Assembly: GCA_964270895.1 (NCBI GenBank)
Contig: OZ185439.1
Strand: one strand, 5' to 3'
DNA: 64,000 bases
DNA from: Podarcis filfolensis
Lineage: Eukaryota
The number at the start of each line of letters is the position of its first letter. The first letter of the stretch is position 1. Shown piece by piece: positions 14,700-31,654 of this stretch. Made by a program: the position numbers and the translations under genes. The notes under the pieces were generated by a model. That model did no database searches, had not been told where the DNA came from, and worked only from the letters and a program-made list of their open reading frames with translations.

Positions 14700-16330
14700 G
14701 GCTCCTTCTTGGAAAGCTCGAGAGTTCGCTTCAACAGGCAACGGGCGGCTCGGCCCGGTCGGTTGGTTTGGAGACGTACCTGTGTGCGTCCTTTTGTGGA
14801 TCTTGAGATTTTCCGAGCGAGCGAAGACTTTCCCGCATCCCGGGAAAGGGCACGGGAAAGGTTTCTCCCCCGTGTGGACTCGGATGTGGTTGACCAGTTT
14901 GTATTTGGCCTTGAAAGGCTTCCCTTCCCTGGGACACTCTTCCCAGAAGCAAATGTGGTTGGACTGCTCGGGCCCGCCGACGTGCTCCACGGTGACGTGA
15001 GTCACCAGCTCGTGCATGGTGCTGAAAGTTTTGTTGCAGGACTTTTTGGGGTTGGCCAACTGCTCGGGCTCGATCCACTTGCAGATGAGCTCCTGCTTGA
15101 TGGGCTGGCGCATGTAGCGGAAGAAGGCCCCCGGCCCGTGGTGGGCTGCCATGTTCATATTCATGTGGCCGTAGCCGTGCAGCTGCGGCGAAGCGTAATG
15201 TTCGGAGCGCGGGCTCGTCACCTGGCCGTACTGCTCCGGCCGGCCGTACATGTCTCCGGAGAAGCCCAGGCGCATCTGCCCGTTGACCACGTTGGGCGAC
15301 GCGTGGCCGGTGGCTTGCTCGTGGAGGCCCGGGAAGAGGAGGTGGCCCGCCGCCTCGCCGTGCCCGTGCGGTCCGCCGAAGCTGCCGGCCGCCGAGGCGA
15401 AGAGGCTGTGCTGGGCGCTGGCCGCCGCCGCCGCCTCGCCGAAGCCCCGGTTGCGGAAGAGAAAGTCCCGCGTGGAGTTGAAGGCGGCCGCGCTGGAGTA
15501 CGAGCCGACGTGGCCCGGGTGGTGGTGGTGATGCCCCAGCGCCGCTGCGGCCGCGTAGCCAGGGGCCTGCGAAGTGAAGGCGGTCTGGCCGGCCGAGGCC
15601 AGCTCGTGGCTGCTGGGGTTGAGCTTGAAGGCGCCCATCCCGGCGTCCGCGAAAGGGTTGATGCCCAGTCCCACCTCGCGCTCCGTCACGTCGCCCGTGG
15701 CGTGGTGGCGAGAGGAGCCGAAGGTCGTCACTCCGATGGCGGGGTACTGCGGTCCGGCATCCAGCAACATCTTCTCCCGGCTCTCAGGCAGCTGCGGCAG
15801 CAACCGCCGAGGAAAAGTGATGCAAAAATGAAATAAGATTTAAGAAAATATAAATTAAGGAGGAAAAGGGGGGGAAAGGACGTGGAAGAAGTGGGGGTAA
15901 GCAGCAGCAGCAACAACAACAGCAGCAGCAGCAGCCAACAAACTGCCGGATCAGCCGACGAGGAAGAGAGCCGCCGTCGCCGCCGCCGCCAATCCAAGCA
16001 GCCTCTCTCTCTCTTTCTCTTGCAAAAGTCCGCGCGACGTTCACCACTAAAGCGACCACATCAGGAACTCCCCCTTCGGCATCCGCGCACCCAAAACACA
16101 CACACGCACACACACAAAACGAGAGGGTGGGTGAGGGCTTAGGGGTGGGCAGAGCCCGCGGAAGAAATCTAGAAGCTGCAAAAATTGGAGAATAAGAATA
16201 AAAAAGACATCGGCGCGCGCACAGAAAAACCGATCGCCCCCTCTCTCGCCTCTCGGACTGCACTTTTTCAGGGGGGTTCAATGGGGAGGAGGGAAAGGAT
16301 TCAGAAGACTCCGCTCGCGAATAACAATGG
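14700..16330. other. CpG island over ZIC1 exon 1
   Basis: Visibly very high GC and CpG density compared with the flanks (judged by eye, not computed). Confidence 0.8.
14780..15770 (-). CDS. ZIC1: ZIC1 coding exon 1 (N-terminus, ZOC, ZF-NC, zinc fingers 1-3)
   Basis: ATG at 15770-15768 gives [18 protein letters not shown]..., the vertebrate ZIC1 N-terminus. It contains [12 protein letters not shown] (ZOC), [14 protein letters not shown] (ZF-NC) and C2H2 fingers, and ends HKRTHT-G|GTACGT (phase-1 donor at 14779). Confidence 0.98.
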
Positions 16331-16500
16331 TGAAGAGAGAGGAGGAAACAGGCTCAGACGGGGGAGGGGGGAGCAAAACAAAAATTAAACTTCCTTCAGT
16401 TCTGGTTATTTTTTTTAATTTAAAAAAAGAGGCTAGAGGAATGTAGCGGACTAGCGAGCAATTTTCTCTTCTCTTCCAGTTCTTGCACTCTTTTCCCCCT
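15771..16500 (-). other. ZIC1: ZIC1 5' UTR region (TSS not determined)
   Basis: GC-rich leader upstream of the ATG with CTG/TTG and CGG triplet runs and short uORFs; 5' boundary approximate. Confidence 0.45.
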
Positions 16501-16599
16501 TCCGTCTCTTTTCCCCCTCCTTGGGCTTTTTTCCCCCTTCGCTTTCCTTTTTTCCCCCTGCTTTGTTAAAAAAAAAAAAACGGCGCAAATCATGCACAA

Positions 16600-16930
16600 T
16601 ATTGTCTTTTGCGGTTTATCTTCCTGGGGAGAAACTTTCACCTCCTCAGCCGGGCGGTGAACGCGAGACTGATAGCGGCAATCATTCCTGCAGATAAATG
16701 AATTGAAAAGACGACACCGTCCCCCCCTTGATGAATGGGAGAAGGAGGAGGAGCTACGTAAAGACCGACGTCGCTGATCATTGGTGCCTGGCGGTTCCCA
16801 CTTTCGCTTGCAACTCCCTCCTTCCTCTCCAACTAAGGGTGCGCAAAACCTTCCTTCTCTCCTGATTGGCCAGCTCAGCTCATCAATCCCAGGTATTGTG
16901 AAGCGCATTGACATCGCTTTTGACAAACAG
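16600..16930 (-). promoter_or_regulatory. Putative ZIC1 promoter
   Basis: Two CCAAT boxes on the minus strand (ATTGG at 16780-16784 and 16865-16869, the latter in a CTGATTGGC NF-Y-type context); complex CpG-containing sequence directly upstream of the leader. Confidence 0.5.
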
Positions 16931-29414: not shown

Positions 29415-29929
29415 AAAAGTAAATGGTTGGAGGCTAGCAGGAGAACAGAAAGCAGAAGGGGCTTGAGCCACGATCCAAGCCATGCAGGAGTCAGGAGATC
29501 ACCCAGGATACCTCCAAGCGCCTGGCTCTTCTAAGCAGATGATCGGGGACAACCAAAGCGTCTTTGGAAGGGGTGGGGAGAAAGCAACAGCCACCCGCCG
29601 GCCAGCCTCGCCTCCCAGGCGCTCCCAGGAGCTGCTGCCGCCGCTTGCTCAAGGCCTTGTTCCTCCTTTGGCAACCACTGCTCATTAGCGCGTAAACGAC
29701 TCGGAGGACCCCTCGTTTCGTCTGGGGAAGACGGTTCCAGCGGCCCTTAATCAGTTAAACGCAGATAAAAACAAAATGCGGGGAGTAAATGCAAACACCG
29801 GACAAGCTCGGCGCACTGGTTAGGGCTAGAGAGGGAGGGGGCAAAGGGGGAAGAGGAGGAGGAGAAAGGGAAGGAGCTTTTGGTGGGGGGGGGGGGAATT
29901 AGCCACAAACGCCGCGCAGGCGCACTGCT

Positions 29930-30110
29930 TCCCGAGTCCTCTTCCTCCCTCCCCGCCCCTTTACCCCTTCCTAAATCTTTTCAGACTTCAGCGGGGACCT
30001 GTCAGCGCTGACTTCGGTCAGGCAGCTTCGGCCAATCAGCGCCCGCCCTGATTGTTTAGCTCTCTGGGTTGGAGCCTAGTCTGTGAAGCGCTATTCAGTA
30101 GCCTCCCAGC
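29930..30110 (+). promoter_or_regulatory. Putative proximal ZIC4 promoter
   Basis: GGCCAATCAG CCAAT box (30032-30036), CCCGCCC GC box (30042-30048) and a reverse CAAT element in CpG-rich sequence about 430 nt upstream of the ATG. Confidence 0.55.
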
Positions 30111-30462
30111 GTCCTGCTGCTGCTTCTCAAAGCGTATGGGATTCCACGTAGGCATTAAAAAAAAAAAAAGGAAGGAGGAAAAACACACACACACAAAATA
30201 ATGGAAGAGGAGGGGGAGGAAAGAAAGGGGAAGGGGGGAAGAGGGGAGCAAAAACAAAACAAAGCCAAATAGTCCAGACCAAGAGAGAGGGAGGGGAAAA
30301 ACCTTTTTTCTTTGCGGGTGGGGGGGGGGACTTTCAAAAAAGTTTTTCCACCGCTCTTTCCCTCTTCCTCTTTCTCCCTCGCTCCCCCCTCCTCGGCGTC
30401 AGGTGACTTTTTAGAATTGTAGTAGAACCAGGAGAGCTTGGAGGCTTTGGGGGAGCCCAGTA

Positions 30463-31654
30463 ATGGACTCTGCTTCACTCTCCAAACGGAACACGGCGCT
30501 GAAATTACTAGGCTTGGCAGGGGCTCCTCGTCATCGTCATCACCGCCTCCATCACCACTCCCCTCAGAGCATGACAGGCTTCGCCGGGCATCCCCACTCC
30601 ATGGTTCCCACGCACCCTGGGGAGTACGCTGCAGAAAGCCGCCTCGGGCTGAGTCCATTCCGGTCAGAACACATGGGGCACCACCACCATCCTCTCCATC
30701 ATCATCATCACCACCGCCACCACTCTCATCCTCCTCATCACTCAGCGGCCCTTAAGCTCAGCCCTGCCCCTCAGCCTCATCCCCACCATCCTGTGACAGG
30801 CCAAGCCGAGGTGGTACCCAGTCCAGCAGGAGCATTTGGCCCGGCGCAGTCAACAACAGTCCCTTACGCAGTCCCTCACCCAAGTCATGCTCTTTCATCA
30901 GGTAGGGAATTCTTCCTGCGCAGAGATCTGACAGCCCCAGTCATGCCAGGGCTCCCTTATCAACACTCTGCTGCTACAGGTTCTCACCATGGAATGTTTG
31001 TCTCAACAACAGGTAGCTACCCCGGACACCATGCTCACCACCACCATCACCACCACCTCCACCACCACCACTCAGAAGCCGGAACTCCCTCGCTTTTTAC
31101 TGGACTCCACCATGAGCAACCTCCCCATGCAGCTCCAGGTGGCCATCTAAACGGACAGATAAGGCTGGGGCTACCTGGAGAAATGTATGCCAGGTCTGAA
31201 CCTTTCACGCCAGTACCAGTCTCCAGGACAGATCCTTTTGCTGCTTCCTCCTACCACGGCTACGGTGGCATGAACCTGAACGTGAATTTAGCTCCACACC
31301 ACGGCCCTGGGGCTTTCTTCCGCTACATGAGGCAGCCCATCAAGCAGGAGCTCATCTGCAAGTGGATCGAACTGGACCAGACTCCCAAAAAATTATGCTC
31401 GAAAACTTTCAGCACCATGCACGAGCTGGTGACTCACGTCACCGTGGAGCACGTTGGAGGGCCGGAACAGTCCAACCACATTTGCTTCTGGGAAGAGTGT
31501 CCCAGGGAAGGGAAGCCTTTCAAGGCCAAATACAAACTGGTCAACCACATCCGAGTCCACACGGGGGAGAAACCTTTCCCTTGTCCTTTCCCGGGATGCG
31601 GGAAAGTCTTCGCTCGCTCGGAAAATCTCAAAATCCACAAAAGGACGCACACAG
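30463..31654 (+). CDS. ZIC4: ZIC4 coding exon 1, long form (His-rich N-terminus, ZOC-like motif, ZF-NC, zinc fingers 1-3)
   Basis: [20 protein letters not shown]... with [10 protein letters not shown] (ZOC-like), [25 protein letters not shown] and [12 protein letters not shown]; donor CACAG|GTCAGT at 31655. The head-to-head position with ZIC1 identifies it as ZIC4. Confidence 0.95.

Follow-up and report, generated by a model that had tools for sequence, protein, structure and literature searches.

The stretch of DNA analyzed here (the window) comprises 64,000 nucleotides (nt) of Podarcis filfolensis (GenBank assembly GCA_964270895.1, contig OZ185439.1) and contains the squamate ZIC1/ZIC4 pair, arranged head-to-head (Table 1). 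The spliced ZIC1 product has 450 amino acids (aa) and the ZIC4 product 549, and the ZIC4 exon shares 89% identity with the 550-aa ZIC4 of Lerista and 83-87% with that of other squamates. This report concerns the last 253 nt of the exon that encodes zinc fingers (ZF) 1-3, which are almost the same in ZIC1 and ZIC4, two genes that separated more than 400 million years ago.

Table 1. Features of the ZIC1/ZIC4 locus in the window.
Feature	Position	Strand	Remarks
ZIC1 arm of proposed conversion tract	14780..15032	-	final 253 nt of exon 1; begins just past the second Cys of ZF1, spans ZF2 and ZF3, ends at the splice donor
ZIC4 arm of proposed conversion tract	31402..31654	+	final 253 nt of the ZF1-3 exon; GT after 31654
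ZIC1 ZF1 inter-cysteine loop	15033..15074	-	14 codons; 5' border of tract
ZIC4 ZF1 inter-cysteine loop	31366..31401	+	12 codons; 5' border of tract
ZIC1 ZF-NC block	15075..15131	-	19 codons
ZIC4 ZF-NC block	31309..31365	+	19 codons
ZIC1 exon 1, coding part	14780..15770	-	ATG at 15770; 95% identity to gecko ZIC1
ZIC1 exon 2 (ZF4-5)	13485..13648	-	unconverted control; silent sites saturated against ZIC4
ZIC1 exon 3 (C-terminus)	12373..12570	-	ends EWYV + stop
ZIC4 long first coding exon	30463..31654	+	397 codons; ATG at 30463
ZIC4 last exon (ZF4-5 and C-terminus)	36424..36882	+	without second intron; unconverted control
Assembly gap 1 (N)	17740..17879	.	intergenic spacer; flanks collinear with gap-free gecko locus L005 (5062 / 5207)
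Assembly gap 2 (N)	20608..20736	.	intergenic spacer; flanks collinear with gap-free gecko locus L005 (7451 / 7770)

In the register that pairs position 15032 of ZIC1 with position 31402 of ZIC4, the two arms differ at only 7 of 253 nt (14979/31455, 14976/31458, 14970/31464, 14967/31467, 14853/31581, 14850/31584 and 14802/31632). Every difference lies at a third codon position (7.0 synonymous, 0 nonsynonymous), the 84 codons of both arms encode an identical protein, and the synonymous divergence (dS) between the arms is 0.14. The first-pass annotation, made from the letters of the window, had given the same count in the same register, together with a perfect run of 113 nt (31468-31580) that we also recovered. 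Given seven differences, such a run is unremarkable alone (p = 0.11), and a separate, younger short conversion behind it was dropped as unproven. A repeat search independently identified inverted arms at 14767-15050 and 31384-31667, which are 94% complementary and 16.3 kb apart, in agreement with the spacing of about 16 kb first proposed; measured from tract to tract, the two are separated by 16,369 nt in the window, against 16,362 nt in the gecko.

The similarity is sharply bounded on both sides. At the 3' end it collapses at the donor GT of the intron, so that the exon-intron boundary is indeed the limit that had been claimed, and at the 5' end it is limited by the ZF1 inter-cysteine loop, which carries paralog-specific amino acids and is 6 nt longer in ZIC1 than in ZIC4. 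The introns and N-terminal parts of the two genes are unalignable to each other. The adjacent ZF-NC block is nearly identical, as had been noted, although its own codon borders give 3 differences in 57 nt in place of 2 in 56. Of the 150 aligned nt of the next exon (ZF4-5), 35 differ, as do 24 of the 47 codons that specify the same amino acid; the latter recount replaces an earlier 18 of 33 and leaves the proportion unchanged. The density of differences thus contrasts strongly between the tract and exon 2 (Fisher p = 7e-8), and a permutation of variable sites revealed that identical sites are clustered in the window pair (p < 1e-4). This runs test is our own implementation of a Sawyer/GENECONV-type permutation and not the GENECONV program.

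Both genes were compared in Lerista edwardsae (skink), Anas (duck), Heteronotia binoei (gecko), Tursiops truncatus (dolphin), Takifugu flavidus (fugu) and Spea bombifrons (frog), and ZIC4 only in Mauremys mutica (turtle) and Pantherophis guttatus (snake). On a 252-nt tract, ZIC1 and ZIC4 of the same genome differ at no site in Anas, 1 in Lerista, 7 in the window, 10 in Heteronotia, 15 in Spea (where the 3' 155 nt are identical), 29 in Tursiops (with about 94% identity over the 5' 170 nt) and 47 in Takifugu, in which silent sites are saturated (proportion of synonymous differences, 0.79). The borders are alike in all species: the tract begins at position -252/-253 and runs up to the donor GT, and identity falls at the ZF1 loop in each. 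The runs test was significant in Anas and Spea (p < 1e-4), Lerista (1e-4) and Tursiops (0.007), and found no significant clustering of identical sites in Takifugu.

These counts bear on the possibility that one copy was assembled or polished with reads that belong to the other. Two unexpectedly identical copies are what collapsed or cross-polished paralogs in draft assemblies look like, the scaffold is not gapless in this region, and the two arms of the window are known from assembled sequence. However, the arms still differ at seven sites, their flanks are unique, and the values for the window are in line with those of its squamate relatives. Unlike collapsed paralogs, the same near-identical tract with the same borders recurs in five other independent assemblies (Lerista, Heteronotia, Anas, Spea and, partly, Tursiops), and the differences are graded. 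Six independent assemblies with differing counts therefore do not reflect a flaw of one assembly, and we consider an artifact of this kind very unlikely.

A second possibility is that an overlapping function at the nucleotide level, such as an exonic enhancer, an RNA structure or a splicing code, has frozen the synonymous sites of both paralogs since their duplication. The near-identity of the paralog tracts at wobble positions would be expected under such constraint, ZIC loci are rich in conserved elements, including many conserved intergenic blocks, and synonymous-site identity in an exon of a developmental transcription factor is reminiscent of exonic ultraconserved elements. Those elements, however, are conserved between species, whereas the silent sites of the ZIC tract are alike only between the paralogs of one genome. 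Between the window and Anas, 34 nt of the tract differ in ZIC1 and 34 in ZIC4, corresponding to a dS of 1.31 for both genes, which is no lower than that of exon 2 (1.08 and 0.97); between the window and Tursiops the tract dS is 1.0-1.3. Moreover, 30 sites changed together in both genes between the window and Anas, and in fugu 47 of 252 nt differ between ZIC1 and ZIC4 although the fingers that they encode are almost the same. The first-pass annotation had named orthology grouping with low dS between distant species as the sign of constraint; what is seen is a window-duck dS of about 1.3, and constraint is accordingly a most improbable explanation.

Site patterns and trees separate the tract from the next exon in the same way. 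For the window and Anas, 30 informative quartet sites in the tract group the copies by species and none by gene, whereas in exon 2 the numbers are 2 by species and 17 by gene. The comparison with Lerista gives 7 and 0 in the tract and 0 and 24 in exon 2, and that with Spea 27 and 0 in the tract. The maximum-likelihood (ML) tree built on the tract united the two paralogs of a species in five of six tetrapod pairs, namely in Spea (98/94), Lerista (93/93), Heteronotia (84/79), Tursiops (72/97) and Anas (identical copies). The ML tree of exon 2 recovered separate ZIC1 and ZIC4 clades at 98/93, with fugu on both sides. Forcing a ZIC1 clade on the tract was rejected by the approximately unbiased test (difference in log-likelihood 103, p 4e-70). 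The DNA of other species thus bears out the prediction, set down with the initial proposal of ectopic conversion, that the paralogs would cluster by species only within the tract.

Taken together, we propose that recurrent interlocus (non-allelic) gene conversion keeps ZIC1 and ZIC4 alike over the final ~253 nt of the ZF1-3 exon, a reading to which we assign a probability of about 0.93. Silent sites of the tract evolve at an ordinary rate between species but are alike within one genome, which indicates concerted evolution by conversion and not constraint. Within-species differences in sauropsids and the frog (0-15) are far below those between major clades (31-51), and therefore separate conversions must have followed the divergence of the frog, bird, gecko and skink lineages. 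A single ancient conversion early in tetrapod history, with slow divergence and no recurrence since then, would account for all tetrapod tracts being more alike than the two fugu copies, but it is hardly credible because it predicts a within-species distance at least as large as the ortholog distance (34 nt) where 0-10 differences are seen, and because derived states are common to both copies within single lineages. Compositional convergence through a shared GC content at third codon positions (GC3) was also considered as the cause of the species grouping and was rejected for sauropsids and the frog, as exon 2 of the same genes has few species-grouping sites.

Several observations weigh against recurrent conversion or limit its resolution, in addition to the dependence of both window arms on the assembly. 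The two copies of the window are not sisters on the ML tract tree and form a poorly supported grade with snake ZIC4, and at tract positions 54, 180, 183 and 231 window ZIC4 agrees with snake ZIC4 against window ZIC1. Only a handful of sites, tract position 81 among them, support conversion in the window lineage after the snake split. In Heteronotia the runs test is not significant (p 0.40), though the density test is (Fisher p 4e-6). The sample includes one mammal, one frog and one teleost. Finally, the data are compatible with more than one number of events and with either direction of conversion, which is probably mixed among lineages.

The claim that the conversion was recent or recurrent held in its second part: on the sequences compared, conversion appears to recur across tetrapods, in the frog, squamates, the duck and partly the dolphin, and is not special to this genome. 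"Recent" is a relative term here, with a paralog dS of 0.14 in the window tract against 0.21-0.29 for squamate orthologs. At seven tract sites both window copies share a state against both Lerista copies; they match snake ZIC4 at positions 103, 165 and 219, and the state at position 81 is unique to the window. In the window lineage, the last full homogenization seems to be older than the split from snakes, or else patchy. Judged by dS (0.14 vs 0.21-0.24), it would lie at about two thirds of the depth of the snake split.

The proposed direction from ZIC4 to ZIC1 found no support. Tract GC3 (0.75 in ZIC1, 0.68 in ZIC4) lies between that of the flanks in either gene, which is 0.91 in the N-terminal part and 0.67 in exon 2 of ZIC1, and 0.51 in the N-terminal part and 0.80 in the last exon of ZIC4. 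Three candidate diagnostic sites (57, 183 and 231) suggest both directions, depending on the lineage: gene-specific states are retained in the window and the dolphin, the gecko looks ZIC1-like at all three, and the duck and skink are mosaics. In the ZF-NC block, informative sites group by orthology within squamates and by species when squamates are compared with duck or dolphin, and the block appears to have been converted earlier or elsewhere, not recently in squamates.

From the same comparison, conversion seems to have been incomplete or of greater age in the dolphin and to be lacking in fugu. In Tursiops (locus L007, with ZIC1 exon 2 at 157..1 and the ZIC4 exon at 21152..), ZIC1 and ZIC4 are more diverged over the 3' third of the tract, and their exon 2 differs at only 16 of 150 nt (dS 0.40), against 28-36 of 150 in other species. 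The dolphin pattern may represent either conversion with other borders in mammals or convergence on a shared GC3 (0.84/0.96); given the low dS of exon 2, shared GC3 may contribute to the dolphin grouping. In Takifugu, zic4 (3286-8677, minus strand) and zic1 (10001-12082, plus strand; locus L008) have the shortest tract spacing, 5.1 kb. As fugu shows no conversion in spite of this spacer, proximity alone does not drive the process.

Mechanistically, a break in one inverted arm would be repaired from the other arm without crossover, by synthesis-dependent strand annealing or short-patch heteroduplex repair. The copied patch would be bounded by homology, with its 3' stop at the intron and its 5' stop at the ZF1 inter-cysteine loop, where ZIC1 and ZIC4 differ in length and sequence. 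The borders are the same in every species and the next exon is never part of the patch, which favors a homology-limited heteroduplex over a cDNA intermediate. Strong purifying selection on the identical finger residues would in turn preserve the likeness of the arms for the next conversion, making the process self-sustaining.

Textbook examples of interlocus conversion include the human gamma-globin genes HBG1/HBG2, the red/green opsin exons, RHD/RHCE, the inverted Hsp70 pairs of Drosophila and the palindrome arms of the Y chromosome. The ZIC1/ZIC4 tract resembles these cases in that a short tract clusters by species, its borders are sharp at the end of homology, the flanks group by orthology, and the arms are linked on one chromosome, here in inverted orientation. 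Unlike them, ZIC1 and ZIC4 are not young duplicates, and exon 2 separates the two across fugu and tetrapods; the surroundings of the 253 nt are unalignable or saturated, and more than one class of tetrapods shows the process.

The accepted history is a tandem head-to-head duplication, from which ZIC1 and ZIC4 come, followed by quadruplication, with the duplication predating the vertebrate genome quadruplication (PMC6175831). A paper on the chick zic genes noted the high similarity of the finger regions and nothing further on this point. Our full-text search found no report tying Zic1/Zic4 to gene conversion or concerted evolution, with subscription works (Aruga et al. 2006, Genomics; 2018 Zic book chapters) outside its reach.

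Zic phylogenies, as well as ideas on sub-functionalization, draw for the most part on the zinc-finger domain. Should fingers 1-3 have been repeatedly overwritten in tetrapods, then trees, ratios of nonsynonymous to synonymous substitution (dN/dS) and orthology calls from this region would be misleading, and this portion of the DNA-binding and protein-binding surface could not diverge between ZIC1 and ZIC4. The pair would also be a natural example of homology-limited conversion persisting in very old paralogs, in which a 250-nt island held alike by selection at the protein level is enough for conversion. The states in fugu (none) and dolphin (decaying) may offer a route to studying escape from conversion. 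Were a crossover to occur between the inverted arms, the regulatory interval that the genes share would be inverted and their 3' halves exchanged.

A bolder scenario, to which we give somewhat under even odds, is that ZIC1/ZIC4 conversion has been roughly continuous since before the frog-amniote split (more than 350 million years ago), locking fingers 1-3 into co-evolution. Selection may favor such a "conversion trap", from which teleosts would have escaped independently, while mammals would be escaping, with ZIC4 then diverging. If so, the pair would be among the oldest paralogs known that are still in concerted evolution, and published Zic trees from the finger domain would be biased toward a ZIC1/ZIC4 affinity in tetrapods.

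There is also a practical aspect, in that short reads and probes placed in the tract cannot distinguish ZIC1 from ZIC4 in birds and squamates. ZIC1/ZIC4 have reportedly been named among the hits in copy-number-variation papers on chicken (PMC13072240, PMC11426044); short-read mapping there may be ambiguous if the two chicken arms match each other to the degree that those of the duck do.

As for the rest of the locus, the N-terminus of the long form of ZIC4 (30463-31300) is very histidine-rich, with several His runs, and the single-exon long form agrees with the 545-555-aa ZIC4 models of other squamates. The ZIC1-ZIC4 spacer is collinear in order and orientation with the gap-free Heteronotia locus across both N gaps, which are clear of either arm and of every exon. 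Seven intergenic or intronic segments are 80-90% identical to Heteronotia and collinear through the whole spacer (16425-16963, 17880-18061, 19114-19671, 20737-20935, 22898-23603, 25997-26807 and 28418-28714), and these conserved blocks are candidate shared regulatory elements of a bidirectional ZIC1/ZIC4 pair. Most other "inverted repeats" of the region are (GT)n/(CA)n microsatellites (19058-19119, 26103-26153 and 39652-39699).

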